Positions 14,035-44,200 of a DNA stretch of 64,000 bases are shown one piece after another. The stretch's first letter is position 1; each line of letters begins with the position of its first letter. The stretch spans positions 23,808,001 to 23,872,000 of the forward strand of contig OZ365109.1 in NCBI GenBank assembly GCA_977030845.1, written 5' to 3'. This DNA comes from Fimbriosthenelais zetlandica. Taxonomy: Eukaryota. Under the pieces are notes generated by a model. That model did no database searches and was not told where the DNA came from. It was given only the letters and a program-made list of their open reading frames with translations. The position numbers and the translations under genes were made by a program.

Positions 14035-17000
14035 GAGAGAGAATCTGAGAGAGAGGGAAGGAGAGAGATGAAGGGATGCGGAGGGAAGGAGGATGAGGAT
14101 ATATATAGAGCAATGAGACTCAGAGAGAAAGCGAGGGAGGAAAAGACTTTGATTCGTAAATGAACAATACAAAATTGATTTAATAATGAATAATAAGGGA
14201 CAAAGTTATTTAATCTGATAAGGAGATAATTTTGTAGACATCATAATTATGTCCATGACAAAAGATGAAATAACAAAGATAGGGGGAAAGAAGATAGGTT
14301 GGGACAGTGAATTGGGAAGAGGGGGGAAGTGAGAAAAGAGGGTACAACGGGGAGGGAGAAGGGAAGGGGAGAGAACTCATTTGAGAGAGAGGGGGGAAAG
14401 GAGAGAGATTAAGGGCAGGGGAGAGAAACTCAGAAATAGGTGTGAAAGAGTACGACTCAGAGTGAGAGCAGCAACAGCCCCGCCTCCTCCTTCTCCCTCT
14501 CCTTCTCCTCGCCCTCCTCCCTATCCTCATTTCTCTCCCAGACCAGTGGAGTTGACGCGAGCTGGCAGGTCGCACGTCCCTACATAACTTCTACCTCCGC
14601 CACCCGCCTATCCTTCACTTCCTACCTGGCAACTCAACACTCCATTACCAATCAATTGAATCTGAGGAATTTCACAAGACACTAAAATTGTGAAATCTAT
14701 CATTCCTAAAGCAAGAAAGCGAATTTCTTAAAAAAAAACCTGAACAGAATACCAGTGGACATTTTATCCCTCAGGGAATTAACCAGTGGCAAGTTTCCCT
14801 CCTGTGGATGATGGGATTTGTAAGACACGGCATAGCTAACCGATTTCTCGGCTAGTACATCTTGGCATGTGTAACATTTCACCTTTGGGAGGTATTTGAG
14901 GACCCAACAACTTCTGAGTAAGAATGAAGAGGAACACGTTTTTGGGTGATTAATCTTGCTGCAGAAGGTGGCAGAGCTGATATGAATGAACTGAGATGGA
15001 ATTGAACTATAGTGAGTGAAAGACTGGGACTGTAGCATTATAGCAAAATCAAAGGGCATTCCATCCATACTGCAAATACGATTAGTATCCATTGCTTAGG
15101 AAATTTTCATTCCTAGGCTTCATCAAATACTGTGTTAACACTACACTAATAGACCAAGCGTGTTGATAGAGTCGAGACGTGAAAGGAGTTATAGGGAGAC
15201 CTGGAAAGACATAATTCATAACAGAAACTGGCCGAGGAAAAAAGCTCTCAGTGATTAAACATCTCAAAGGTCGAAGAGGTGCGGTCCTAGCAAGAACAGT
15301 GGAATTTATCTTGTGCATCCGAAGGACGGTTAATGAAAAGGCATTTATCAGAGGAAGGAAAACAATTGAAGAACTAAATGAACAGGGGATGTGGCAGTGA
15401 ACGTGCCAACAAGGATGGAGGTGTTGCGATTACGTAGCAAAAGCTCAATGATCCTTTTTGAGCAGCTGTAGTAAGGATAAGTACTTCATTTTTGTTTAAT
15501 TCTTAATTGGACCGAAAGATAGGGCCGACAAACAAGATATTGTGAATATATTTTAACAAGGATCAGAATAGGTCCTCAAAACTGGCACTTTGGTTTCAAA
15601 AAGCCAAGGCAAGCAAGTGTCCAAAAAGTGTCAAGATACAACGTTATCAATACAAGGAGTTGGAACTTTTGTGGGATCTTGACAAATGTTCTCAAGAATG
15701 ACTCAGCGTCCTTTTGACCTACTACTACCAACGTCATGTCGTACGTCACGAACCCCTCCAATACTGATACGGTGATAGCGTCGTTAAGAAGGAAATAGCA
15801 AGGTTGTCATGGAAACATTCAGTGCAAATGAACCCCCATGGACAGGAACAGGGAGAGGAGACAGAAAGGAGAACGCTACTACTGTCCCTGATGCACCATC
15901 CATTATTATAGTCCTCGAAGCAGCTCTGATGGTTTTGATTCTCGTGGAAAATGGCTTGATTATATTTTGCTTCCTCAAGAACCAGAAGCTAAGACGGAAC
16001 ATCACTAATTATTATCTAATCCAGCTGACCCTTTCAGACTTTTTCACTGGGTTGTTCACGGGTTTTCACATAGCTGTGCAGGTTAACCCAACTCTGCTGA
16101 CACTGGAATATGCCTGCCTGGCTCGCTACTGTAGTATGATGCTCGTTTGTTCCATATCTCTGTTCTCCATCCTTTTAATAACTTATGACCGTTTCGTCGC
16201 TATTTTCAGGCCTTTCTTTTACAGAAGCCATGTAAGCAAGAAACGAGTGATTACTAAGTGTCTTATAATTTATGTCTTTCCCATAATCGTGTGTCTCATT
16301 GTACCTCTGGTTTGGAGAAAGAACCTGAATGACAAACAATGCCTCATGATCTTTGTGTTTCCATTTGAATACCTAGCCTATATGATCACCCCTATGTATT
16401 TAGCAACTGTTATATTTAAGTTTTCAATGTACATTGTCATCTTCAACGAAATGGCCAAGCGTTATGACAGGGCCAAGAAGATGGTGCAGAACAGATCGAG
16501 GCAGTCCATAGAACAATTAGAGAGAATCTCGAGGAGTACAATTGCCCTGACAAAAACGGGAGCCATGGTTCTTGTCAGTTTCACTTTGTGCTGGACGCCT
16601 TTCTTTGTTCATTTAATAATCCAACTGGTTGGAGTAAAATTTAGTGTCACCTTAGCCAACACCATAAGCTTGGCCACTTTCATGATGATCCTTTTAAATT
16701 CAGCTCTTAACCCTGTTATTTATGTCTTGAGACTTCCCTACTTCTGGAACGAGCTGAAGAGGGTTATTTGTAAAAACTCAGCCGTGGATGAGCCTGAGAG
16801 GGGAGGGAGTCTATGGGATAACCACCCTGGGGGGACTCCTCGCTACAGAGGGTCCCTAGATCGATGTGGGATATACTTTCTGCATTCCAGGAGTGTCCTC
16901 CACAGAGGGAGGATGGCTAACAGACTGAGGGACAAAAGGAGACAGTCAGGCGAAACCTTGCTCTCGTATAGAAAGAGATCAGACGAGAGTGTAGAGTCTT

Positions 17001-19099
17001 ACCAGTTTCTATGGCAACAACAAACTTTGGCTTTAGTTCGCGAGGGCCAGTGTCGAGATATGATGCAGAGGTCCCTCAGCTGTCCTCCGCCGGTTATGGA
17101 ATATGATCTTAACATGTACAAGTTGGAAAGAGACAAGAGAGAGTCCACTAAAAGTGGTAGACAATCCCCAGGAGAAATCTTTCTCTCAGTGCTTTGAGTA
17201 ACTGTATTAGCCTATACCATCTCAGCAATGCTTTGGTGAATGAAATTCAGGCGAAAAGTTAACATTTGTCCTAATTAAGGGTTAGGTGGGTTGTTTCTCA
17301 AGTTATATGAATATGAACAATGAACAGTGTGTGTGCTCTCGGTTACAAGTTTGTACACCTTGATCTTAATTCCGGAGCGAGATACGAAATGTGAGTGCTA
17401 ACACCTGTAACTGGAAGTAACTGCTTCAGCTCTTGATTTGAAATGAGCAGGAGCAATTCAGCAGTATATTCTTAGAAGAAAGGGGGACAGAATATTAGTG
17501 TAAATATTATTTTATACAATAGTGTGATATGAATATTATTTGAATACAGTTATTTGTATATTTATGTGGTGTACAAGGAATATTTACTTTCCCTTTTCTT
17601 TCAGACTTGTTATTACATAAACCAAATTTGAACGAATATACTTAATATTCCCTGAAGGAAATTGAGTTAAAATGATGTGGTATAAAATGAGTCAGTGATG
17701 ATTATTCTGTGATATTGGTAGGCCGAATCAGTTTAACTGAAAATGTTGACAATGTCAGACGAATAAATTAAGAATTCAAATTTTATCCTCTTTGGTTTCC
17801 AAGTCTTTATGCATCCCAGAAGTATTTATATATAGGGATGTTAAATTATCATTTTCCTTGTTTTAATATTTATGTGATTCAAGAAACAGGGAATTGTATT
17901 AATAGGGGGCAAGAGATATCATTCTAATAACCAAAAATAGGCCAAGTGCATAACAACTTCCTCTATGGCTGTTTGACAGCCAACAAATCAAGTATTGCTA
18001 AATAATTTGGGCCATAGTTTTTCGACAGGCTTATAATTTTGGATTAAAAAAAAATTGAAACGAATTTGGATTGTAACAAAATAAATTGTAAATATACCAG
18101 CCGTACTTACTTAACATACTAACAAAGCGGTTTCGACCATGGGGCTGAGTCCTTTGCTGGGGAATATTCTGAGTTTCTTGCATAGGTTCTGGGAAACCAG
18201 TTGGCATACTAAGGACTTCTTTCGCAGGACCTGTAAGTGATAAAAATCAGTCCTCAAGCTGGAAATTTGGGATCAAGGGCTCCAATGAATTATGAGCTTT
18301 ACTATTGTTTTAGTATTTTCAAAAACTTTTAATAATAATTCAAAATCAGGAATTATACCCGAGTAGAAATTTAAGTATGCTCACTAGACTTGGTAGCTTC
18401 CTCATCATCGCTGGAATCTGAGCTGGATGCTTCCCCACTCTCTGAGCCCGAGGTGCTCATCATCCTCACAGGCGAGCCTGAAATCAATTTTATTAAATTT
18501 AAATTATTCTAGATAGTTTTCCTACAAAATATCAGGTTTAAAAAGCTGCAGCAAATATTTAGTAATATTGTCCCAGACTAAAAACATTAGCAATACTAAC
18601 ATTCTGAGACTTTTCCCATGATTTGTAGGCTTGAACTTGAACCAAACAAATTACACATGGAACTGGAAAAAGTTTTCTATAATCTATCTTGGAACATTTT
18701 ATTTCATCTCGAGTTTATTACCACCATAATCACCTCTCAGCCTTGACTAATAATAGGTTTATCCATTTTAGTACAATACTCCGACTTCATTGCAGCGAAT
18801 TATGGTCGCAATAATTCACCGCGATTTCAAGCAATAATTTACAGAGACCACCAAATCAGTGTACTAATCAATTATAACCAGTGGGGGGGGACCAAAAACA
18901 TTTTCTTTCTACATCTGAAAAACCTGTTCCACACGAATATTGAGATCGCATTTTACCTGAGTCCTGAGGTTGTGTCTTTACAGGCGAGTTAGAGACAGCT
19001 TTCTTTGGTTGGGACTGGTGACCAGAAGAAGGAGTGCTCTGAGATGACTGAGGTGTGCTTTGGCTTGAGTGAGAAGAAGACTGAGACTGCTGCTGCTGC

Positions 19100-19136
<37 letters not shown>

Positions 19137-22100
19137 GCTGTTGCTGTTGTTGTTGTTTCTTTGACTTTTTGTTGGGCGAACTTTTCATCTGCTTTAATTG
19201 TTCTGAGGGTGTGAGTGGACGTGCGGCCTGTTGGCTGGCTTTACTACTACCTTCAATTCTGGTACATAGAACGAATGAGAAACAATATATAAATATAAGC
19301 TATTTATATCTTTGCAAGAAAATCATATCACAAAATCATCTGAGATGTGATTTTGAAAAGTAAAATTACAGTAGGTTTCATAATAAGTAGATCTACTTTA
19401 TAGATTACAATGACTTGAGAACTTTTCTGGAATATTCAAAAATGGGAGTTTTTTCCACTAAGTTAATACACTAGTGGGAATTTAAGGGCATACAATTGGG
19501 GGAATTTGAGGAGTATCATACGTAATGTGGGCACCCCGAAATGCCTAAACATCAAAAAACTTCCATCCCCGAATATTTAACATATTCCATGCTACTATTG
19601 ATAGCACAGCACAGACAACAACTACTAAACACTATCTAACAAAAATTCAATTTGTTAAATGTCAATTTTGTAGTTTATGGCTGATACCCCAATAAAGCAC
19701 CTGTTGCTCTTCCATCATAAGTTAGACTTGGCTTTCTCTGAGTGACAAACTTATAAAACCTGCAGTAATGTTTACCAGGAACTGTAGAAATTTTGGAATT
19801 CATTCTGGCTGCCCTAATACAACACCTGTTGCTTTTCCCATACCCTATCAGGCCACAACAGTACAATGGTCCCCTAAATCTGCCCAGGAAGTAGGTTCAG
19901 GAGTAGTACGGTGAGTAGGCAATAAATAAAGCTGGAAAGCAATAAGCCTGGACGGTAGTATTCATGGCCATAGATGGTCATACCTAGGAGGAGACATGGG
20001 TTGATTTATAGACACCCAACTCCCAAGAAGCTCCCAAGGTCTGTTTCTTAAATATCTGTAACGGATCATGTGGTAGAAGGTGGGCAAGGCTGGGGGTGGA
20101 TCAGGTGGGGGGGCTAGATGGACTGTACAGACGTTCTTGATTTCTCAATGGAAAAGTTGGCGGTTAGAGATTTATCAGAATTTGTTTTATTGATTGGGGT
20201 TCCAGAGAGGTTTTTGAGTAGAGTAGGAGGCTGGTTCTTGGTAAGGCATGGCTAGTTTCTTGATTTGGAGTGAGCAATCTTTCGTCAGGAAATAATGGAA
20301 TTTCCTGTTTCTGGGAATCTCAAAAGGATTTGGGATGATTTACCTAATGCAGTAGAAATGGGGAGGGAAATATCCTAAGCTACATCCCTCTTCCCAAGAA
20401 CATTTTATGCACCTTGGCAACAAGTCATATTATGTTGTAATTACAACGCTAACTATTATACATGTATAATGTATCTAGATAGACATTGGTTCAAGGAATT
20501 CATTCGAAAATTATTACTGTAGATGAAAATAGCAATGGATATGTACAATCAAGTGACAGACATTCCATGTAAAAATGAATACTTTTATTGGTTCTCACGG
20601 AAAGCGTTTTTTGAAGTTCAAATTTGGAGTTATAGTGTCCGCTTATAATCGTGAGAATATGGACCATTCATCTTTGTTCAAATAAATCATTTTCCTCAAA
20701 GTGAGGTGTAACTCTTCAAAGGACCTTGATGTTAATTAATCACAATTATTATCGGGAAGCTCCAAATTGTTATATTTTCATTTTCTCAAATATTTTTTTA
20801 TCAGATCTTTTCTATTCCTCATAATTTCCCGAAATTCGTTAGTTCACAATTGTTTGCACAGTTTTTGCTTGTTTTCACATTTCTTTTCGCATTTTGAATT
20901 CTCTAATTTTCCTTACAGTTCATGAGTAATAATAAAGACATCACACACGAATGCTTCGCAGGAAAACAAGATCTACTGTTTCAATATCACAGACTGTCAT
21001 GTAAAAGTTAAATATTTAACACAGATACAAATTTTCAGACATAAATACATGGCTAGATTTCTAGAACAGACACATGCACAGTTGTAGCGCAGCAACCTTC
21101 AAGTACCAGATTTATCACAGACGAAAGTCAATCAACTTTGTAGTTCTAGAGTGTTACGACCAATTTTCAAGGGCTACATGTATATATGCTAGGAGGGAAA
21201 GGCCCTCTCGTATTTTACTGACAAATTGGTCACATGACAGAAACATTGAAAGGTGAAAATTCGGAAACTGCCTGAAATTATACAACTACTGCGGTAAGCA
21301 GGGCTAAATATTTTAGAGTTCATTTTTGTCATTCTAAATAATTGACAAAAGTTTGTATAATTATGATATTTTACTCCTTCAGACAAAGAAATCAGTAAAA
21401 AAAAATCTCAAAAGATATGTGAATTCTAGGAGACAGAGCAGGCGACATAAAATGACCTGTGTGTATTATGTAGTGAGTATTTTCTGTTCACTATGCTATA
21501 GGTCATGTGCTCCGCTTCTGGTGTAACTCATATTTTTCGATGATGAAATCACTTAAATCTTCCAGTCTTTGCAAACGTCCATACATTTCACCGGTACCTG
21601 TTAGAAATTCTGAATATTTTCCACACAAATAGGGCAAGAGTTCATCCATCGCACTATCAGGTAAGTTTATCCTCGTCTTGGCTTTATTATACAGTTCTGG
21701 ATGTTTCTCTTTGAATTCTTCCAGTCCAGATATTGAGCTTACATATGGCCTTCTATTACGTTCTAACGTATGATCATTGAGGAATTGTAAGATTTCACTA
21801 TGAATACCTTCACAATAGGTAACTAAGTGCACGCCCTTATATTCTTGGTCTGTTCTGGATTTCTTCTTTCTTTTCTTAGACACAATGAGCTTTGTATCTT
21901 TTGACGTATCTCTCTTCTTAGAATTTTGTGTCTTCACAACCGGCTGGGAGCTGGGGTCAATTTTGTTTTCCAAAACTTTTTGGAGTGAATAACTCAGGGA
22001 ATTCTCTTCCCAGTTTAGCGATCTGTATCCCCCAAGATCCGGTAAAGTTTCCGGTGACAGGGAACAATTTTCAAATTCTGTCTTCAACATATCTTCGTTC

Positions 22101-24068
22101 TTTTGCTCAGATGGGGATTTTTCCTTTCTTTTCTTTCTATCGTTGTGGTTCGAATCTTTTGGCTTGGGGTTCTGTCCCTTCACCAACTCATGGGAACTAA
22201 GATCAGTTATGTCTTCCTCAACGGTTTGGCTTGTATTTTTCCCAGAATTGTATTTTAAGTTTATTGTCTTTACATCTCCAATATCTGGCAAAGTGTCGGG
22301 TGAGAGAGAACAATTTGTATTTTTTTCAAAGATATCTTTATTCGGGTCCTCCCTTTTGCTTTCCATATCAAAATTTCCTAAAGGATTCAGGTCTGATTCA
22401 CACTTCCCATCTGTGCTGCTAGAAGAAATTCCATTTTCAAGAGATCCCGATTTCGATTTTTCGGCAGGGGCAAATTTCTGACGAACCTCGGGCCAAATTT
22501 CAGGTAGCACTTCCGATGAATTAGTTTGGATGTTTTTTATTTCGTGTGTTTTTGAATTGGATTTCCTTCCAATTCTGATGGGAAGAGCGGCCAAGTTTCT
22601 GGAAACAGATTGTAACCAGAGCTAATCTTTGGCCCTTTGTAAGTTAGTGATATATTAATTTCTTTGCAGATGTTTTTACCTCTTGATGTAAACGCTATGA
22701 GACACACTTCTTGGGCTTTATCAAATGTGAACATTGGGACAAATATTAAGATGGATGAATGAAGAGTGATCATGTCACACTTCCAGAACTAATGTTTAAT
22801 CCAAAACATTGGACTCCAGGTAGGTGCCAAAATTTTCAAAATCTTGGCAAAGCTGTGGAATCAGCCAACTAAATAATGCACGGGCAGAAGTCAGTGTAAA
22901 ACAAAATTTGAAACTTATTGATCAAAATAAAATGGAATAATTTTCAAAGATTATAACTTTCCTTGACATAGTATTAGGCCAACAGGTTAAGAAATGAATA
23001 CGGTACCCGGAATGATACGGTATTCGATTTTAAGAAGTTTTAAACCTAAACATTAAGATAATGTTGCTCACCTTGTCTTTTTAAGTTGGATGGTACTTGA
23101 TAATTTTTCTAGGGATATTTCTCCGGTTTGGTTGTCTATTATAAGGACACACTCTTTTTGGATGGGTCGCTTGTTGCCTTTATATACTGTGTGGGTCGTA
23201 CCTGAACCCTATAAAGATGTGGAAAAAAGTTGAAGGATAAAAAATGGCTAAAAGAATGAGCAAAAATCAATTTGAAATATCGCGGTAGGCCAAATTATGG
23301 CATGGTCTAAACTTTTAAAAATATTAATGTACCTTACGGTATTCAACAAAATAATAAGCCCACCATCTATACATGTATAATTATTGACCCTACTTTGACA
23401 GTACAATGTGATTTGTCGATTAAGTGGGTTTCCTGTGAAATTATATTATTTTTTACTTAATCTAATGATTATTTTTAAATAGAGGCTTTTATACTTACTT
23501 CTATATGTGGAACAGTTACCGAAACCGAATTACTTTCTTCTATGTTCAAAGAGGCCATTTTGGATGGGTCGACAGAGGCAGGCTTAAAGTCATCTAGAAA
23601 GATAAAATAACCTGTATTAATTAGCCGAATTATTTTATAAGCCAATATTAGGATACCAGTAGGCCCCTGGAACAGGTCTACATTTTCATTATTTTTAAAG
23701 TTCATTTTTCAGAAGCTCATTGGCTATACTGTACTGATATATTTTCAGAGTATTTTATTTTCATTAGGCTGATTAGCTTACAATAATCGAATAAAGTGAG
23801 TTTTTGTGTATTGAGTTATTATTATTTATGTCTTTAGATATATTGAGATAGGCTAGGCTCCATTAGATTGTGAACACTTTGTCTGATGAATTTTAACTGT
23901 ATAATAGCTTACACCCATAGCCATGTCATTTTGATCTCTAGGTAATACATGTCATTGGATAGACTACAAACGATACTCACAGCGGATTGAGTGGAAGCTG
24001 CTTCCATGATTAAAACTGCTGCCTAATTTCAACTCTCTTTCCCCATCACCAAACAGATGGTGATCCAT
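11617..24068 (-). CDS. EAF: ELL-associated factor (EAF1/2 family), 7 coding exons
   Basis: Exons 24068-23981, 23593-23499, 23208-23072, 19258-18957, 18477-18385, 18230-18111, 11660-11617; all GT-AG with matching phases. Translation [19 protein letters not shown]...[14 protein letters not shown]...[46 protein letters not shown]...Q23...[10 protein letters not shown]...[13 protein letters not shown] matches the EAF hallmarks (YDFKPAS, KGNKRP, LEKL, C-terminal DLxLSESxSDSD). Confidence 0.95.
13956..14055. repeat. (GA)n microsatellite followed by purine-rich low-complexity DNA to ~14540
   Basis: Directly visible; explains spurious SL/RE-rich ORFs. Confidence 0.95.
15809..17197 (+). CDS. Intronless class A (rhodopsin-like) GPCR, orphan, nested antisense in EAF intron 6
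   Basis: 462-aa ORF with 7 hydrophobic segments, TM1 EN(G), TM2 LxxSD, TM3 C...YDRF, TM6 CWTP, TM7 NPVIY, N-terminal N-glycosylation sequon (NATT) and a long C-tail. Ligand family not assignable. Confidence 0.93.
   Translation: METFSANEPPWTGTGRGDRKENATTVPDAPSIIIVLEAALMVLILVENGLIIFCFLKNQKLRRNITNYYLIQLTLSDFFTGLFTGFHIAVQVNPTLLTLEYACLARYCSMMLVCSISLFSILLITYDRFVAIFRPFFYRSHVSKKRVITKCLIIYVFPIIVCLIVPLVWRKNLNDKQCLMIFVFPFEYLAYMITPMYLATVIFKFSMYIVIFNEMAKRYDRAKKMVQNRSRQSIEQLERISRSTIALTKTGAMVLVSFTLCWTPFFVHLIIQLVGVKFSVTLANTISLATFMMILLNSALNPVIYVLRLPYFWNELKRVICKNSAVDEPERGGSLWDNHPGGTPRYRGSLDRCGIYFLHSRSVLHRGRMANRLRDKRRQSGETLLSYRKRSDESVESYQFLWQQQTLALVREGQCRDMMQRSLSCPPPVMEYDLNMYKLERDKRESTKSGRQSPGEIFLSVL
21503..22598 (-). 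CDS. Large orphan coding exon inside EAF intron 3 (candidate alternative terminal exon of EAF)
   Basis: Stop-free frame of ~365 codons in AT-rich DNA; the track start is TTG, not ATG; acceptor atctgtttccAG ends at 22599 and the first base completes a phase-2 codon; contains basic NLS-like runs and a duplicated NCSLSP[D/E]TLPD[I/L]G motif. Confidence 0.7.
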
Positions 24069-24484
24069 TGTCAATGATGATGTATACAGGGAGTAAACTT
24101 CTAGTTAGAAAAATCTTGAATATGAGTTCTAAAATGACACGTTTCCCTCATAACATATGGCCGGGCTTCCACTTTTTCCAGATCTTCGAGTTCTTTCCCT
24201 TCACACCGGAAATAGCTGACAACCAGTTACAACGCAGATATAATTTCTTTGATGATGGACATGGTATTTGCCTCTTTAAATAAGTTGATACCACAAAAAG
24301 CATTCAAATCATCTCACTTGAAAACTATGTGTAGTAAACTTCAGAATTTGTTAACCCAAGGTAAAAATCATGACTAAAATATGCCAGAGGTCTCTACCGG
24401 AAATAAAATCTGTGCTGACTGATGGATGTTTTGCCATTTTCGGTAGACAACTCTCGAGAGAGAGACCTTTCGCACCCGGAATTG

Positions 24485-25300
24485 GCATGCATCTGGAGTT
24501 CAACATGCATCTGGAGTTGACCCCAGAATGCATCTGGAGTTCGTATGTAGGTCAAAGTATGGTGGCCCAAAAGTATATAAAGCCCAGCATCAACTCCAGT
24601 TGCATGCTGCCGAACTCCAGTTGTATGTTCAGATGGGAATAAAGTCAGCATACATCTGGAGTTCTGCCCAGCTGTGCACGGACTCCAGTTGCATGCTGCT
24701 GATCTGGATATATAGGATATTTGTAAATGGGAATTAAAGTCAACTCCAGTTGCATGCTGCTGAACTCCATGTGTATGTTTGGATGGGAATAAAGTCAGCA
24801 TGCATCTGGAGTTCTGACCAGTTCTGCATGAACTCCAGTTGCATGCTGATGCTGCTGAACTCCAGTTGTATGTGTGGATGAGCTTCCATGGCCTATAGGA
24901 AGAAAGTCAGCATGCATCTGGAGTTCTGCATGACCTCCAGTTGCATGCTGCTGAACTGGACATATATAGGCCTATAAGTCAGCATGCATCTGGAGTTCTG
25001 CCCAGTTCTGCATGGACTCCAGTTGCATGCTGCTGAAGTGGTATGACATTTACATAGGAAAACCGCAGCAGCATGCAACTGGAGTTCACCATGAAAGAGC
25101 ATGTTGAACTCCAGATGCATGTTGAACTCCAGTTGCATGCTGCTGCAGCATGCAACTGGAGTTCAACATGCATCTGGAGTTGACCCCAGAATGCTGCAGC
25201 ATGCAACTGGAGTTCAACATGCATCTGGAGTTGACCCCAGAATGCATCTGGAGTTGGGCCATCAACTCCAGATGAATGCTGAACTCCAGATGTATGCTGA
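24485..25300. repeat. Palindrome-rich minisatellite array built from ATGCATCTGGAGTT / AACTCCAGTTGCATGCTGC units in both orientations
   Basis: Dozens of TGGAGTT / AACTCCA and GCATGC copies; a larger unit (aaagtcagcatgcatctggagttctg...actccagttgcatgctg) recurs near 24640, 24790, 24903 and 24976. Confidence 0.9.
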
Positions 25301-25844
25301 GTTTTTATGAATTAAATGTTTGCTTTTCTTTTGGGCCACCGTACTTCGTCGAATCTGGGTCAACTCCCATCGCATGCAGGGATAATGCGCGAAGGGACTC
25401 TGTCTCGAGAAAGTCCGCCGTAAGTATTAAGTGATTTTCTTTCTTATTTGTTCTGGAATTTCCACCTGAAAAGAGTATAATGTATAGTACTTTTCTACTT
25501 TTATCATCTGGCAAGATATAGTTACTTGAAACTGTGTCTAACTGTGAAAATTCAGCAAATATGTCCTCATACCCCCTATTATCGCTCACGTAACGTGTCT
25601 ATTATGCTGGGAGTGCCAATCATATAGAACTGTCTGTAGAACAACATTTCCAGGCCTAGTCTAGAGACTATAGAAGGCTTGTTGTATTATGATTACAGTA
25701 TATTGTTATTGTTGATGACCTAGGTCCTTCTTTTCGGACCAGGCTAGGGCTATTAGCCTCGGGCTAATTAATTTTCAATTAAATTACGGTACCCGGTAAT
25801 TAAAAAAAATAAATTAACAATACACTTTTTCTTTTTGTAGGAAA

Positions 25845-27598
25845 ATGGCTCAAGCTGATGATCAGACCAAGAAGCTGTATGACGAACCCGATCTATTTCA
25901 ATGTGTTGAAAATCAGACGAGAGAATTAACTTTAGAAGAAAAGAACAAATTGGCTGCGGACACTCAGCTCGTCAGCGATTTCAAACGCCAGAAATTTGAA
26001 AAGGAGGCACAGAAAAATTGGGATTTGTTTTACAAAAGAAATACAACAAAATTCTTTAAAGACAGACACTGGACAACTCGAGAATTTACAGAACTCTGTG
26101 ATGGCAAGGTATGCCAGTCCATTTACGGTATAGACTATAGGGCCTAGCCCTACCACTAAATTACCAGTACCGTAATTATTTTAACTACCGTACCGGTATA
26201 ATTTCACAGGAATCTTTCCTGATAATAAAATATGATTGAATCGTTTGTAAATTTTGTTTTACTGTTTTAAGGATGTTGAAACGGAACGTAAACTACTCGA
26301 AGTAGGATGTGGAGTAGGAAACTTTTTATTCCCGTTATTGGAAGACCTCCCACACTTATTCATCTATGCTTGCGACTTTTCTCCCAGGGCAGTTCAGTTT
26401 GTGCAGGTAATTTTCCCCACTAATCTTAAGATATAGTACCGTGTATTAACTATTTATTGACATTTATCCATCAATCATGTTGTCTATTTTGTTATATTAT
26501 TGTCAATATACTAATGCCTTCTTTAAAAAAAACTTTTTCGTTGTGTTTCAGCAAAACCCTTTGTATAAAGAGGACCGTTGCCAAGCTTTTCAATGTGACC
26601 TAGTGAAGGATAATTTAACTGATCACATAGCAGCGAATTCACTGGATATTGTCACTATGGTATTTGTACTATCGGCAGTCGGTCCAGAAAATATGACATT
26701 AGCATTATCCAATGTGTACCAGGTAGGTTAGGCCTAATTATTTAACATCTGAATGATTCCTTAAAGTGGAATTAGAATCACTTAGTGTGCTAGTTCTTTT
26801 ACAGACACTCACCAAGATTCAAGTGTATTTTCCTTTTTTGAAAATTAATAGACATCAGATACCGGTATACATGTATACATAGTTAAGATTTGAATTTTAT
26901 ATTTTATTTTTAAATTTGTATTTCACCATTTCAGGTGTTAAAACCTGGCGGATTTGTGCTCTTCCGGGACTATGGCTTGTATGATTACGCTCAGCTACGT
27001 TTCGCTAAAGGTCATAAATTAGAGGAAAACTTTTATGTGAGGCAGGATGGCACCAGGGCCTACTACTTTTCTAAAGGTAAGGTATAGTGAGTCCTATAGT
27101 ATGATGTTAATCGATTTATGTCACATTTAAATACCTTTCATAAAATGGTATTTTTCACATGTTTAATTTCGAGATTTCCCCCTTTTTAATAACAAAAAAG
27201 ACAAATGTTATATTAACGTGTTAATCATGCCGATATTATGCAGTAGCCTTATGGGATAAATAAAAGGTTACATCTACAAATAACATGCACTGTATTTTCT
27301 TAACCTTTTCTATCTTCCAGAAAAACTCGATATATTATTCACAGAAGTTGGCTTCACCACAGAGAAAAATGAATATATTCTGAGACAAACTGTAAATAAG
27401 AAAGAAAATCTCTGCGTTCCTCGAGTGTTCGTACAAGCCAAGTTCTGCAAATGTGAGGAGGAAGTAGAAAAGAGGCAAATATCGGTACCTGGCCAAGGAT
27501 ATGATAACGAATCCACCATAGATGCTGAAAATGAATTTCACTCTCCACCTTCAACATTAGCTAATTCTAAAGATAGGGAATCCGACGATCACGATTGA
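25845..27598 (+). CDS. METTL6: tRNA m3C methyltransferase METTL6, 5 coding exons
   Basis: Exons 25845-26108, 26272-26406, 26552-26722, 26935-27076, 27321-27598 (GT-AG, phases consistent). Motifs [35 protein letters not shown] (SAM motif), [42 protein letters not shown] match METTL6. An acceptor just before the ATG implies a non-coding first exon. Confidence 0.96.
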
Positions 27599-35200: not shown

Positions 35201-38200
35201 TTGAAAGAGTTTAATACACATTTAGACATACCTTATTTGGAGGAGATGGGGAATCCATTGGCACTTCTCCACTCAGTTTCCTTTTCTTGAGGATCCCAGC
35301 ACTGGGCGACGCTGATGGGGAGTACATCCGAGGCAGCTGTATGGGACGGAACGTGGGACTGTTGGCCGTGAGTAGCGGCTTACAAGAAGGAGGTGATCCA
35401 CTCTCTGCTGGAACACCACCCTGCTCTTCATTCTCAGATGTTCCTGGTTTCAATATGGACTTAGTCGGGGAGTCGGATGACTGGCCTTGGGGCTTGAGTG
35501 TGGTGAACTTCTTCCGGGCGTGGAGGGGTCCTGAGGGAAGGGACGATCTGGGTGCAAAAAGCCGGGACCTCTCCAGGATGAGTCGAGCCCTCGACTGATG
35601 TTTTGTAGCTGATGTGGGCGTCTCTGGTTGTTCCAGTGAGAGTGACTTCCTAGTCGGAGACAGGCTTTTCTTTTGAGGTGATTCTTCTATCTCGTACAGT
35701 TTCCTTGGAGACCTTCGGGGCGATGGCATCTCCTGGGCAACCTCCTCAGTGGGTTCGGGATCATTTTTGTTCGGGGATTTCCTAGGTGATTGTCTCACTG
35801 GTTTTTCTGGAGATTTCACTGGGGATGATTTCTTAGGGGATGCCCTCGTATTTTTAGCAGGGGATTCTGGTTTTATTTCCACCGGTTTTATTTCTTCTGG
35901 TTTTGTTACTTTGGTTTGGTCCTCGATTGGAGTTTCTTCAACATGTATTTCAGACACTTCAGGTGTAGACTCCTCTATTTTCACTTCATTGCTTATCATT
36001 TCTTCAACTTTCTCTTGTGATGGAGTTACTGCCTTTGTTTTGCGCAGTCTTTTCAGTGGAGATACAGATTTAGTTCGCTGGCGCCTATGACCAGGGGAGC
36101 CAGGACGTCTTCTTTGAAGAGAACTCAAAGACCGATTCAATTTTAACGAGACTTTAGACCGTAACCTCTTATTGACAGGCGACGTTTTCATGTCTATTGA
36201 CAAATTGGATAGCATCTTCTTCTTTTGGGCAATTTTCTTTTCTTCAAAAGTAATGGTTTTGTTAGGTGTGGAGGTCGTTTCGTTACCGGTAAATATGCCC
36301 TCGACATATAATCCGTCGCTGTCTTCTTCAATAGGTTTCTGTCCATCAGTATCAGATTGCGAGGTGGGAATATCCTTTAGATCCTCATTTTCAGAGGCAA
36401 TGTTTTCTTTCTCTAAATTCCTTTGATTGTCGGTCGATTTATTATTCAGCCCCTTCTTTAGATCTGTTAGGGGTATATCGTCATCATCTGAGTTGGTCTG
36501 GGCTTCTTTTTGCCTTTCAGCAAGAATCTTGATTGGAATATCGTCTTCTGGGTCGGTCTCCTCTGCCTTGGACTTAGGCTTTTGACTCTCGGTTTTTTCT
36601 TCAGAGTTTTCAGCACTGGTTTTCTCGACGTCTTCAATTCTTTTTCTCTTCCCTGTCGATTTCCTTCTACCGAGTTTCGGCACAGGTGACAGTACTGCTT
36701 GAGAATCTTGCGAGGAATCGTAGGCACGACTGACAAGTGTCTCGTTAGGACGAAGGTTAACTTCGACTTGTGGTTCTTTTTTCTTTTTAGTTTTTTCTGG
36801 AGTTGATGATGCATGTTTGTTATCAGTGTCAATATATTTCCTCGGAACAGACCGTCTGCGGTGTGATCTTTTCACATCATTTGACATATCTAATGAGGAC
36901 CTGGAATCCTGAGTCTCGGATGATTCAATGGGACTTGAATCGTCATCAGGGACCTTCTTCACAGCTTTTAGCGCCTTCGGCGGTCGGCCACGTCTAGGCT
37001 TTGAAATAAGAGTGGCATTCGAATCTTCAGAAGATACTGTGTTAGTTATATCAATGGGTGAAATATCAGGGTTCTCGGGTGGATTTGATTCCTCCGACTG
37101 CTTTTGTACACTATCTGGTTTGACTGCTTCATGAGTTTCAGTTTCGATATTCTCTGATTCAGTTGCCACTTCCATATTTGCTTCTTCTATGGTCATCATT
37201 TCATCCAACAAATCTGCTTCGCCCTTGCTAACTTCCTTCTGCTCTGGAACGTCTTTTTTTACCTCGGCTTTCCATTTTTCCAAGCCAAAACCGTCTTGAG
37301 AACTTGGTATAATATCTTCCATATCGAGGGGGGATATGGGAGCTGGTTTTTCCTGACTGACTTTACTCAATCTGAAGCTGCTCCGTCGTTTCAACTTCTT
37401 GACACTCGTCTCAGACGGTGTGGTGATCTTGGCTACAATATCGTCGGAGCTTTCAACAGATGGAACGGAGAGAGACTGAGAAGTGAAGCTCGATTTTGAT
37501 GTTTTCACTATATCCTCAGGTAACCTCGACAGCTGAACGACCGGATTGTAATCGACAGAATCCATTGGTGTTTTTCCTGGGGGTTTTTCAATCACATCCA
37601 GCGAGTCAGGAACAACTTCAGATTCATCCAAATTGAACAAACGTTTAGAGCATGCATCGTTCTCTCCTACATCAGGTACTTCCACTTCCATTTTATCTGG
37701 CGTCTCTTGAACCATCATACTTTCATGAACCGGTGATGATTTGTCTTGTACTTTAGAAGCAGTTGGGGAAAAGTCTTGCGTTTCCTCAACCAAAATAACA
37801 GGGGGGTCAGTAAGGCGTTTTTTGGGAGATACAGAGAACCAATTTTCCAATTTTTTCATTCCTTCGGATTTGGGTGAGCGTGATCGCCTTTCTGGAGACT
37901 TATGTCCCTTGTTGGAACTTGCCGCGGCCCTGGTTGTTCGATCCCTTGGTTTATGTTTCAAGATTGTCTCTGATGCTTGCGACTCGTTGTCTGCCGAGTC
38001 ATTGTCAGAATGAGATTTGTTGTCCTTGGTTCCTTCATCACTTGAGGAGTTCAAGACAATGGGGCTTTCCCCGTTGGATATCACAGACCTAGTTTGCCTG
38101 TCGGTGGTAGGTTTTTCATTATCTACAATGGACTGACCAAGGAGTTTTGTTGGTAATTTCTTTTTGGGACTTTGGCTGGTTTCGTCTGCAGGAGATGAAA

Positions 38201-41200
38201 TTTTCGCCATTTTGTCGTTATCATCATCAGAAATATCTTTTTCAGACTCCATGGGATTCAAGGCAAAGGTAACCGATTTTCTCCTGAGAGGATTTGCCCG
38301 CCTGACTCTCAAGACTTCAATCTCGGAATTGACTTCCGTTTTCTGTGCAATTGGCTGCTTTTCCTGGAAGATATGAACATTAATGTTTACATGACAAGTA
38401 ACTGCTAAAATTCACATGTCTAAAGTCGAAGATTACAGCAGTACTCTCTCAAATCGATCTATGTCAGTTTTATCATACATGAAGTTTGAACTAGAAATTA
38501 CTTGGGCTTGCAAGGTTCATAGGGTATTTTCTATTAGGGTATACTGATAGAAACATATATTTTATTTTATGGCCGAAATTTCACCAACCTCTTTCTCTAT
38601 GGAATCTTGTTTTTTATGTGGAATAGTGAAGCTGAATGGGTCTTGGGAAGCTTCTGCCGAGGTTGTGCTGAAAAGAAACGTAGAACATAAGTTTCTGTAA
38701 TTTCTGTATTTTCAGTGGTTGATATTCATCATTTAGATTAATGAGTATTACTGGTAAACAAAAATTAACCTTTTCAAATATTTCTAAATAAATATTTTGA
38801 TCTTTTAAAGAGAAAATAGGGAAAAACTTACTCCATGGTGTTATTGAACTGAGACATTAGACTCCGATCCTGGGAGGCATCCAATGCGCTGTACATGGCC
38901 GGCAGAACACTGCAATTATCAAAGAATTATGACATGATCATTTGTACCAAATATTTTTACATTTTCTAGTCCATCAAAACTACCGTAAATTAAAAAAAAA
39001 TTAGTTTAGAGATTTACATAGTTGTATTAGCCCCTTACATCAGTGAATCTACTCCGAACTAAATTTTGACAAAATTTGAATATATTTAAATTCGAAATAA
39101 ATAATCACCTTTTCGCTTTGAGGACTTCGCGTTGATGTTCAGTCAAGACGCGTTTTTTCGGTGCAGTAGAGGGAGTGATCACCACAAAATCTGATTCCTT
39201 CAGATCGTCCAGGCCCAGCTTCTTCCGGGCCCCACCGACGGCCGGAGACTTGGCCCGTTTGAGAGGAGACTTTTTGACATCTGGTGATGCGACCTTTTCC
39301 ATGAAGCTGCCCACTTTTTTGTGAGGTGAAGGCAGGCCTACTATATTAGGCAGGGATACCTCAGTGTCACCACCCTGCAAAAAAAATAACCCTATATAAG
39401 AACAGTTCAGCAAATAGCAGCTTTATTTCACCACTAAATGGCTGTATTTTGATTGGCGTCATTTTAAAAGCATTCCCTTTGATTATGAAACACTTCCATT
39501 ATAAACTTTATCTCAAATTTCAGGGTTTAACTTACAGCCTAAAGGTAATATATGACATAACCCATAATGATCTCTTGATTCAACACAATAGTGGGCTAAA
39601 ATAATATGGATTTTTACCTGACTGAGTTGACTTGCTGGAACTGCTCCTTGCAGGATCACTTCAGAAACGTCCCATCCTGGCAACTTCACTGGTGCCTTCT
39701 CTCGTACCTTAGCTAATACAACTCTGAAAATGCAATATTACGAAATTATAATTAAAATACAAAACAAGCCTCCATTAATACCATTTTTCCCCTTCTTCTT
39801 CACATCCATTCTCTGGTACAGTTTGCATAAAATTAGAAATTTTATTGATGAATGAAACATAGTTTTTATACAGCAACTTTCCACAATCTTGTCTTTCACA
39901 ATGTTAGAAGATAAGCGTAAACTCACTTCAAATCCTCGGGATATTCCAATGGTGCAGAATTGGCGAATGTAGCATTCCACAGGACCATGCTTTGGTTCTT
40001 GATGGACCTCCTGGGGTGGAGGAAGGTGGTGCCCAATACAGGCGAGATGTGAGCCAGAAACTCCGAGTCAAACGGCCCTTTATGCCGACCAGTGATACAC
40101 GTCACAAAGTCTGTGAAGAGTTTCTCCAACTGAAATAATTTGATTAATATCTTTGAACCGAATATTCAACAAAACTTCTTACTTAAATAATGCTCAAAAA
40201 ACAAAAACTGCAATTATCTCAGATCAAGCTAACCTAGCCAACAAATTTTTATTAGGAAACAACAGGCGTGACAATAGAAACGGAAATTTACCTTTTGGAG
40301 CACTTGAGCTGAATACATTCGGCGTGCTGGCTTTTTTGCTGCCCCTTCAAAGAACTGAGCCAAGCAGGGAGCTAGTTTCTCTGTGGCCACAGCGATGACA
40401 GTAGTGGAGGGGAGGTGTGTGAAGATCATACTAAGACCTTCTATAATGCTAAGAGCTGCTATCTGAAGTCCTGCCGCAGACAACTGCTTCTGGAATTCAA
40501 ATAGAAACATAAGTGATACGATGCCGGTAGAAATCTATTTTACCCGAGTTGTGATCATGGAAAGTTTGAAGAATATGTTGATCCATTGTTTGGGGTTTAA
40601 TTAAAGTTGCTCTATCACCAGTGATTCCTTATCACCAATGATTCCAGAGGGTTAGATTTTAGTTCATCAACTGCGCTTATTTACTTATGCCTGCACCTTA
40701 TGGTACGACTGACATTTGCGACTAACCAATAAATTAAAGAAACAAAGTCTAATATATTATACACAAGATTTGTACACGTGTCCTTTAATAATGGACATGA
40801 AAGAAGCGATTAGGGATAGGACTTAGACTAACCTTGGTACTTGGCAAAGGGTCTTCGTTGGAATTCTCATGTAACGCATTGGACACAAGGACAATGAGCG
40901 AGACGAGCGAGTGTAGGTTGGCTAGAGGCCGCTGCTTCTTTTTGTTCATGAATTTTCCAGGGCTGAGTATTCCTGGGATAGAAAAAGAAATGTTTATTTT
41001 TTGTTGAAAAGTAAGATAAAAAATAAATAACGAGATTACAGATGCTTATAAAAGAATTAAGATAATTAGTTTTATGACAATAAATAATATCTAAGATCAA
41101 AATGTAACTTAGTTGTCAGTGTCTTATAATCCTTCTAATTTTACATTATTCAGATGTAAACATTTTTATTTCTATCCTCAAGTCAATAATCTTCAGACTA

Positions 41201-44200
41201 TTTAGATTAGTAATACTGTAGCGCCTACCTGAAGGATTCACATAGAATACCCCACCAGAACTCACGCCTGAGAATTCGACATGTTTGATAACAGTTTGGA
41301 TAACCTGCGAGAGTGTCTCCACACAACGGAAATCCTATTGAAAGAAAGGAATTTGGTCAACATATTTATCCCGTATTTTTATTATGAATTCCACTTCAGT
41401 ACAAAGCTTTGGGCCAACAATAAAAAAAAGTTAATTTATTTTCACTAAGCTTACTAAAGTAAAGTTAAATAATCTCATAAATTGCAAGACGCAGGTTACA
41501 TACCTTCAGTGCATCTCTGTTATTTTCCAAGAGACTCAAGATTCTTGAACACAGCTCCTCACAACAGATGTTAGATTCGGTGTTTGTGACCATGGCTGCG
41601 AGTCGGGAGAAGGTACTGTACAACTCTGTCCATGTTTTCATCATCGCTTTGTATGATGTCTGTAATTGGAAGACANNNNNNNNNNNNNNNNNNNNNNNNN
41701 NNNNNNNNNNNNNNNNNNNNNNNNNNNNNNNNNNNNNNNNNNNNNNNNNNNNNNNNNNNNNNNNNNNNNNNNNNNNNNNNNNNNNNNNNNNNNNNNNNNN
41801 NNNCATGCCAGCAGCTAGATTTGTTTAAAAAGTAGTTTGAGGAAAATAAATAGTATATATTTACCGCAGGGAAATCCGAGCGGAGGAGGTGAGCTAATGG
41901 TAGTAACAAAGCAGCGTAGAGACAGGTGAAGTCGTGCTCAAGGGCATCCCCAGCATTTACTTCATTTGTCTGAAAAGTAAATTAAAACACATTTAATTTT
42001 TTTAAAGGGCGATAAACCACAAGCCGTACATATTCACAAAAATAACAGTTCATCGGTCGACACTTGTCAACAAACTTAGTAGCCAGAATATTTGGGCTCG
42101 CAAAATTTTTTAAAAAAACGGTTGCATTTGGCAACATCCAAAAAGTTTCAGTAGCCAATCTAAAAGTATCAATTTCATGCAGATTAGTGAATAATCACCA
42201 GCTCTAGGTCAATTTAGTGGGCTTGGGCGACTTTGCGACTTTGCGAACTAGTTATAATTTCCATGGTTATTTCCATGGTCGAGTGGTCGCAATTGTAAGA
42301 TTCCCTTATATATTTTTTCGTTGTCCTTTCCAACACTTGAAATATTTTTTTTCTGTGATAGGTACATTATCACTGACACATTCTAAATAAAAATACATGT
42401 ATATGATTAACAAATTGGAGATGTACCTTTGATATATGTTCATGGAGTGGGTTAACCACGACACTCCACATCCTCCATAGCGTTTCCTTGTTCTCCACCC
42501 TGCTAGCAGACTGATCCAGGATTTGTAAAACAGCCTTACAGAAGGCTAGAGCACCATTCTGATTCGTCAATCCACTTTCAATCAATTTCTCAAGGAGAAC
42601 AAAAAACCTGAGGAAAGAATTTAAAATTGTAGATTTTTAATGAGAGTATTTTTAAAAAAATCCATTGACTAGAGTAGAAAAGAAGACAATTTCCAAATAT
42701 AAAAATGGTTATTTTTAATTTACCTTTCCTGAGCGGAGCATGTTTCCAACAGCCGGTGATTGAAGAGCAAGTCCAGCAGGAAGAGTACGGGAGTGCCTTG
42801 CATCATCCCTGTCTTTGAAGTCCCTATGGCAAACGATGAAGAGGCCAGTGCCTTTGCCGGTAGGACCAGAACCGCTTGGATTAACTTAAGCGACTTTTCA
42901 GGCTTCAAACATTGAGTTGTTACGATATGCTGGAGACATAGCAACAAGTGTGACAATACTTCAGAGGCATCACTCTTATTGCCAGTATCCACTACATTCT
43001 TCACATGAGCCACAAGGGCATACCATATATGATAGAGGAGACCGTCATCAAGGTCCTCTTGCAAAGAACAAATACTCTCTCTCACAGCAGAAATAAGCAG
43101 CTGGGCATTCTTCACAAAGAAAACCGGTCCTGATATGAAGTTGTGTTCAAGTTCCCCCAGAGTGAACTTGGGTCTGGGAAGGTTTGGGTCCTCCGAAGGT
43201 AGACCGAGGAGCCGACCGATTATTTGCGCCCCGATGTTTTGTAAGGCACGGAAATGTGGCATGGGACTTCCTGGAATGTTTGGAGTAGCGGGACTAGCTA
43301 TCATACCCAAACGACTTGTAGGCGTTCTCAAACCAGCAGCACTTTTATTAGCCAAACCTCCGATGGAGAAATTAAGCAGTGGTGCTACAACCATCTCAAA
43401 GTAAGTTGTGGCGGTTTGTTTGAGGTTCTGAACGAAAATCCACCAAACTGTTGCCTTGGCCACAGCCACTGATTCCACTTTGGCATTGCTCAGCTTGAAA
43501 ACCTGCATTATCAGTTTGACACGTTTACCGTCCGAGATGATATCATGGTTCAGAGCGAAGTTCTCGATCAGTGTCTTCCAGGAGGTGTAGGCGGCGCATT
43601 TGATCTCCGTCGCGGGGTTCTTAAATGCCAATTCAACAAAGGGTAATAATCGATTGATAAGCTGACCATGATGAAGGAACTTCCCAAGTATGGTGACATA
43701 GTACTGCCAAACTCTCATGGCAAATATCTCCTGCTTGGACGACATAAGGTTGCTTATTTGGTCTACGAGAATGGAGGGACTCTTATCGTTGCTTTTCAAG
43801 TCAGCCATCATTAATTTGCCGATCTCAGTCTGTTGTTTCAGTATGGCAGGCATGCCTAATTCCATCGCAAGCACTGCCCTTTCTCTCACTTTCACCGCAC
43901 TATGTACTAGTAATGGGTACACCAGTTTAGCCCATTTGGGAGCATGAATGGTCATTTCATCAGGGACTTGATTTAGCAGCCTGAAGAAAATAGAAAATGT
44001 AAAATTATTTTGAAGAGGAAAACTCTCAGTAAAGTCCAATATTTTTCTGCCTGGATTACGAAATTAACTATCTAGAGGAGACTCTGTGTCAATTCATTGA
44101 AAATTTCAGCTCAATGCAAAGTAATTTATTACCAACCAATTACTTGACTGTCAGTCATATTACATAATAGATTATGTTCCTTGATCAAGGACTTTCAATC

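Follow-up and report, generated by a model that had tools for sequence, protein, structure and literature searches.

A stretch of 64,000 nucleotides (nt) from Fimbriosthenelais zetlandica (contig OZ365109.1 of assembly GCA_977030845.1, positions 23,808,001 to 23,872,000; hereafter the window) carries an EAF gene on its minus strand and, between the third and fourth exons of this gene, a long open reading frame (ORF) on the same strand. Judging from genomic sequence, this ORF (22598-21503, minus strand) is probably an alternative last exon of the only EAF gene in the genome, reached from the splice donor of EAF exon 3. In nine lineages the exon is physically and phase-coupled to EAF exon 3, and it is protein-coding and under selection. 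Altogether, strong comparative support exists for a conserved, apparently unannotated second EAF product, which would carry a domain not described before.

The EAF gene and a proposed second acceptor

All positions refer to the window, and all EAF exons are read from the minus strand. The coding part of exon 1 (24068-23981, 88 nt) starts with the ATG at 24068; its final base is the first of a split codon, and the donor gtgagt follows. Exon 2 (23593-23499, 95 nt) ends on a codon boundary and matches positions 25-55 of the Pfam EAF family with an E value of 0.0035. Exon 3 (23208-23072, 137 nt) contains the end of the EAF domain, matching positions 60-102 of the 105 positions of PF09816 with 39.5 bits (cut-off 26), and terminates in the donor AAG ACA AG^GTGAGC, where ^ marks the splice site. 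Because of these Pfam matches of exons 2 and 3, exons 1-3 are taken to encode the whole EAF domain. When PF09816 was searched across the whole genome, a single EAF match was obtained, again at exon 3 (40.6 bits).

The coding parts of exons 1-3 add up to 320 nt, and the exon 3 donor therefore sits two bases into a codon. Two acceptors would compete for this donor. The canonical one opens exon 4 (19258-18957, 302 nt), which encodes a polyglutamine stretch and part of the Ser-rich tail, and reads ...taccAG^A ATT GAA; the alternative one reads atctgtttccAG^A AAC TTG GCC, with 22598 as the first exon base. Both would create the same junction codon, AGA. The canonical exon 4 lies 3.8 kb from the exon 3 donor, the alternative acceptor just 473 nt. 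The intron leading to the latter (23071-22599, 473 nt) contains a pyrimidine tract and ends with the acceptor AG at 22600-22599. The proposed alternative terminal exon itself (22598-21503, 1096 nt) consists of one base, 364 codons and the TGA at 21505-21503. An ATG in frame appears first at codon 77, and the nearest minus-strand AATAAA, a candidate poly(A) signal, is found at 20589-20584, 914 nt below the stop. The original prediction, made from the letters of the window, had proposed that exon 3 ends in phase 2 and that the alternative acceptor continues in frame exactly as exon 4 does, that the frame runs to a TGA at 21503, that no ATG is close by and that this AATAAA is the nearest one; the coordinates and the 320-nt sum agree with it on every one of these points.

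Could the exon belong to another partner? A cassette or 3' exon joined also to EAF exons 1 or 2 or to a neighbouring gene, rather than to exon 3, is a highly improbable reading. Exons 1 and 2 end in phases that would shift the frame at this acceptor and cannot be joined to it in frame. The stop codon also follows directly after the conserved C-terminal domain described below in all members of the cleaned family alignment (A2).

Further along the canonical gene, exons 5 (18477-18385, 93 nt) and 6 (18230-18111, 120 nt) each encode part of the Ser/Asp/Glu-rich tail, and the mapping stops with exon 6. Canonical exon 4 contains about 26 uninterrupted glutamine codons (CAA/CAG), at 19085-19160 on the minus strand.

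Position and splice phase in other lineages

The DNA of nine foreign loci encoding relatives of the alternative exon was checked for EAF exons by tblastn; P0003, P0007 and P0041 were not counted for or against synteny. Eight of the nine loci were syntenic (L002/L003, L004, L005, L006, L008, L009, L010 and L011), and in all eight EAF exons 2 and 3 lie directly upstream of the homologous exon on the same strand. Pieces of exon 1 were matched in addition in L006, L008 and L011, and for an upstream ORF called in L009 the precomputed annotation lists Pfam EAF. Across these loci, 189-1287 nt of intron separate exon 3 from the homologous exon, with the shortest donor-acceptor gaps in L011 (189 nt) and L009 (230 nt).

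The splice sites at both ends of this intron are conserved in phase. In the window and the eight loci the exon 3 donor reads ...AA(A/G) AC(N) AG^GT and always sits two bases into a codon. The acceptors consist of a pyrimidine tract and an AG that forms the first two bases of an in-frame codon, so that donor and acceptor are phase-compatible throughout, the acceptor side supplying the third base of the interrupted codon. The original prediction had suggested that related species be searched for the same intronic exon, and it was recovered in these eight loci with identical donor and acceptor phase. Across the nine lineages the homologous exon runs for 199-540 codons (601-1624 nt) to a stop just past the domain. 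Upstream of the acceptor the open frame closes within a few to about 30 codons at every locus, which fits an exon edge next to random intron sequence. Many ORF calls of relatives start with FCR, CCR, FYR or SVSR; these starts are the read-through of a pyrimidine tract plus AG and thus point to an acceptor at the ORF edge. Where the contigs were long enough (L002 from ERR14368249, L006 from ERZ25767047 and L011 from ERZ25069296), canonical exon 4 was found downstream of the homologous exon, which is therefore intronic in these lineages.

The lineages that share the arrangement have domains just 25-54% identical, and the arrangement is therefore old. This requires softening of one part of the original prediction, in which the putative isoform had been called a possible lineage-specific subunit: the ORF is conserved, and its placement next to EAF exon 3 is common to all of these lineages.

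Aligned as DNA, the window and L002, the relative nearest to it, share only four elements: the EAF exons, canonical exons 4-5, the stretch coding for the domain and a 20-nt acceptor region. The last 20 nt of the intron before the alternative exon are 85% identical between the two, and the rest of the intron is unalignable. We read the alternative exon as spliced from exon 3 because the acceptor is the only conserved piece of this intron and because the exon has remained close to exon 3, at as little as 189 nt, despite domain identities of 25-54%.

The principal competing explanation is that EAF intron 3 harbours a gene of its own, with its own intronic start and a product of 290-370 amino acids (aa) without an EAF domain. 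Its transcript might be unspliced and translated from an ATG near or inside the exon, or be spliced from a small unrecognised first exon, and the constant position would then reflect nothing but ancient nesting. We consider this unlikely as the sole explanation, although the evidence is not one-sided. About six of the nine lineages possess an in-frame ATG within the short open segment that precedes the acceptor, somewhat above chance expectation, and the exon of the window itself has one at codon 77. In the window and L009, by contrast, no ATG lies between the upstream stop and the acceptor. Furthermore, all lineages retain the pyrimidine tract and AG at one constant position in the frame, whereas an unspliced transcript would have no use for them. 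For the variant with its own first exon, the gaps of 189 and 230 nt in L011 and L009 are hardly long enough for a promoter as well as such an exon. Comparison of window and L002 DNA revealed no conserved hidden mini-exon or first exon between exon 3 and the acceptor; none is visible because the remaining intron fails to align. The original prediction had named a 5' exon of the ORF's own as grounds for abandoning the idea, and none was seen, the 20-nt acceptor being all that is conserved. A nesting that stays 0.2-1.3 kb from one particular exon across 25-54% domain identity is also hard to explain without a splicing link.

Splicing from exon 3 has several points against it, some of which would speak for a nested gene at the same time. 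None of the 32 database relatives described below is a spliced EAF fusion, the in-frame upstream ATGs just mentioned would also permit an unspliced transcript with an intronic start, and a match to the phase of exon 3 has a prior of one in three. Common descent could moreover account for the conservation of phase, irrespective of which exon truly lies upstream. Nor did a conserved poly(A) signal turn up near the stop; the position of AATAAA differs across the loci and was counted as evidence neither way. The ninth foreign locus, L007 (NCBI GCA_022702875.1, JAKGBN010014342.1; region 300-960), keeps the exon and its acceptor (FCCR^GV) without intact EAF exons. Upstream of it only EAF exon remnants exist: a sequence resembling the end of exon 1 (GHGSSFHHFK^GT) and, about 30 nt later, one resembling the end of exon 3 (IQLKRTR) that lacks a GT donor. 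L007 could represent a paralogue in decay or a gene that has been rearranged, or be due to faulty assembly. An alternative last exon and a nested transcript are not mutually exclusive.

A helical domain at the C-terminus

The last part of the alternative exon (21850-21518, minus strand) encodes a domain of about 110 aa, supported by a phmmer search, the alignment A2, an AlphaFold2 model and a profile match in the genome. The exhaustive phmmer search against 1.84 billion cluster representatives returned 32 matches, 22 of them below 1e-10. One of the 32, P0029 (DUF4309), was a bacterial low-complexity false positive and was taken out of A2. A profile built from an earlier alignment (A1), which still contained P0029, had retrieved bacteria only, swamped by low-complexity words, and was discarded. 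All other relatives share the domain of about 110 aa, always at the C-terminus. The cleaned alignment A2 comprises 29 sequences, i.e. the window and 28 relatives, and its members are 22-54% identical to the window sequence. Both hydrophobic and charged positions are conserved, with the consensus ...RRPxVS...HPxLY...YLC...VQRLEDxxDFI..Y.

With A2 as input, AlphaFold2 gave an all-helical model with a predicted local distance difference test score (pLDDT) of 86.1 and a predicted template modelling score (pTM) of 0.78. This model supersedes the poor one obtained on the single sequence (pLDDT 52.9) and bears out the folded C-terminus of about 110 aa that had been predicted for the ORF.

The domain had also been called unrecognised, and the searches agree. 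In Pfam, no match was obtained for the window exon or for 10 full-length relatives, and nothing consistent appeared across the 29 domain sequences. The domain profile found nothing below an E value of 0.03 among the sequences of solved structures, and Foldseek with the domain model found nothing below an E value of 1 in PDB, the AFDB clusters or the Swiss-Prot models. The ESM Atlas, searched by shape and by features, contained no match to the domain. In further protein-homologue searches neither the whole ORF nor the domain region alone was matched. When 48,161 chains were compared with VIA-align, the best Z score was 5.3, for a partial match to ABD2 of yeast Med15 (PDB 6aly), which lies inside the noise range for helical proteins. 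ABD2 is likewise a small helical domain of the transcription machinery, and it superimposes on 63 residues in the C-terminal half of the model with a root-mean-square deviation of 3.4. We treated this likeness as no match, as it covers half of the domain at 6% identity with a Z score below the chance bound of about 8-13 for helical proteins. As far as sequence profiles and the model can tell, the C-terminal domain lies outside every described family. Fold searches that come back empty are no proof, however, that the fold is new.

The relatives are all prokaryote-style, single-exon ORF predictions on raw contigs of eukaryotes, which stem from ENA, Logan, JGI and one NCBI assembly. When 29 family clusters were looked up, no UniRef member and no informative name was found, one cluster being called 'hypothetical protein'. 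That no relative bears a name is a hint, not proof, that annotation pipelines have never modelled the isoform, as the collections consist mostly of ORF calls on raw assemblies.

Coding potential and copy number

The codon usage of the alternative exon was scored against the other four ORFs of the window longer than 300 aa, taken as coding exons. Three of these carry Pfam domains (7tm_1, Rif1_N and SOCS box), and the fourth, a frame of 1033 aa without Pfam match, adjoins the Rif1_N frame. Given this company, the sheer length of the open frame already speaks for coding sequence rather than chance. In its own frame the alternative exon scored +0.20 bits per codon, compared with -0.16 and -0.43 in the other two frames. 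The reference ORFs scored 0.11-0.29, and the 95th percentile of random windows was 0.09.

Both the protein search and the profile search of the 447-Mb assembly matched one place each, and the domain profile had its sole match, with an E value of 4.9e-41, at the alternative exon. EAF and the domain each occur once in the genome, at the same locus. An origin from a transposon or repeat, which the original prediction had listed among the outcomes that would speak against it, was rejected on the grounds of this single copy in 447 Mb and of the Pfam search, in which no transposase or reverse transcriptase domain was detected.

These data bear also on whether the ORF might be a functionless relic, i.e. 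a disused exon or inserted coding sequence, or one included merely as splicing noise. A domain family without a named member would be in line with such an origin. Yet in nine lineages, between which the flanking introns have become unalignable, the frame has remained open over 199-540 codons, hydrophobic and charged positions are conserved, and the alignment yields a confident fold. The codon usage resembles that of real genes, and a single copy bears no transposon hallmarks. A relic is hence very hard to credit; the alternative exon is protein-coding and under selection.

The predicted second product

Joined to the alternative exon, exons 1-3 would encode a protein of 471 aa. Residues 1-106 form the EAF domain and are followed by the junction Arg (AGA). 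A predicted disordered linker of about 250 aa extends from residue 107 to about residue 355; it is basic, with an isoelectric point of 9.0 and 18% lysine plus arginine. The helical domain occupies residues from about 356 to 471.

The linker contains two runs resembling nuclear localization signals, KKRKEK and KKRKKK, both of which had been reported in the original prediction, and two LPD[IL] motifs. These elements are distributed over two tandem modules of 82 aa (22330-22085 and 22084-21839, minus strand), whose copies are 46% identical (E value 6e-15). Each module begins with NCSLSP(D/E)TLPD(I/L)G, and the KKRK run lies at residue 64 in copy 1 and residue 69 in copy 2. In L002, a single module is present, to which both copies of the window align. 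The duplication of the module in the alternative exon is lineage-specific. At least eight relatives also have LPD[IL] in their linkers, with acidic or Ser residues in front of it; from this recurrence LPD[IL] looks like a conserved short linear motif, and no known motif class was matched.

The N-terminal domain of EAF binds ELL, and the Ser/Asp/Glu-rich tail carries transactivation. According to the proposed mechanism, the exon 3 donor would be joined either to canonical exon 4 or to the alternative acceptor. If the alternative acceptor were chosen, the transcript would end after that exon and yield the 471-aa protein. Such an isoform would retain the EAF domain and with it ELL binding, as well as nuclear import; in place of the activating tail it would carry another nuclear docking module. 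It might then retarget ELL-containing elongation complexes, or compete with canonical EAF. A more far-reaching version, which we put forward tentatively and at slightly less than even chances, is that in a set of invertebrate lineages EAF has encoded two products since ancient times. The second of these would pair the ELL-binding domain with a helical fold not seen before and an acidic LPD[IL] docking motif, and would act as a new, unannotated subunit that redirects ELL complexes to another partner or other genes.

Relation to known arrangements

The predicted product and canonical EAF1/EAF2 (PF09816) have their first 106 residues in common; these make up the complete EAF domain, for which both draw on exons 1-3 of one single-copy gene. 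They differ in all that follows. In canonical EAF, exons 4-6 encode the polyglutamine, Ser-rich and acidic tail (23% glutamine, 27% serine plus threonine); this tail is replaced in the alternative product, which lacks the Ser/Asp/Glu-rich region and has the basic linker and the helical domain instead. In the literature on EAF isoforms we found no description of such a product, nor any paper that mentions the source accessions. To our knowledge, work on EAF has dealt almost exclusively with a small protein of a single architecture.

Alternative last exons with intronic polyadenylation are a general mechanism, and the arrangement in EAF resembles them: one donor faces two competing acceptors, and the proximal exon has its own stop and swaps the C-terminus. 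For the EAF exon, known from genomic sequence, its own 3' end is presumed. Unlike alternative last exons in general, the EAF exon is large (601-1624 nt), carries a conserved domain, occurs in many lineages and is apparently unannotated. Same-strand nested intronic genes also present a long ORF inside a host intron on the host strand. They need neither a phase match nor a conserved acceptor at the ORF edge, whereas the EAF exon has both, in nine lineages.

If the second product is real, ELL/EAF complexes would come in two forms in the lineages that have it. The domain of about 110 aa together with the short LPD[IL] motif would provide a handle on what the EAF tail does. In addition, long intronic exons without an ATG of their own seem to escape gene annotation.

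Neighbouring genes and other features of the window

On the plus strand, a methyltransferase-like gene lies head-to-head with EAF, its first exon at 25845-26147, and a single-exon 7tm_1 receptor gene is located at 15809-17197, downstream of EAF. L006 retains both neighbours, the methyltransferase upstream and the 7tm_1 receptor downstream, both on the strand opposite to EAF. The common EAF neighbours in the window and L006 therefore point to conserved microsynteny. In human, METTL6 and EAF1 are presumably neighbours as well.

The EAF start (24068) is separated from the methyltransferase-like gene, which runs divergently from 25845, by a region containing a block of about 0.8 kb (24485-25304), built from many direct and inverted copies of an 18-nt unit, AACTCCAG(A/T)TGCATG(C/T)TG, in both orientations. 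The block includes a perfect 37-nt palindrome at 25107-25181, and it produces spurious ORFs at 24394-25224.

At 35211-44039 on the minus strand, open frames of 1033 aa and 439 aa are present, the latter carrying Rif1_N. This region is probably a Rif1 gene with giant exons.

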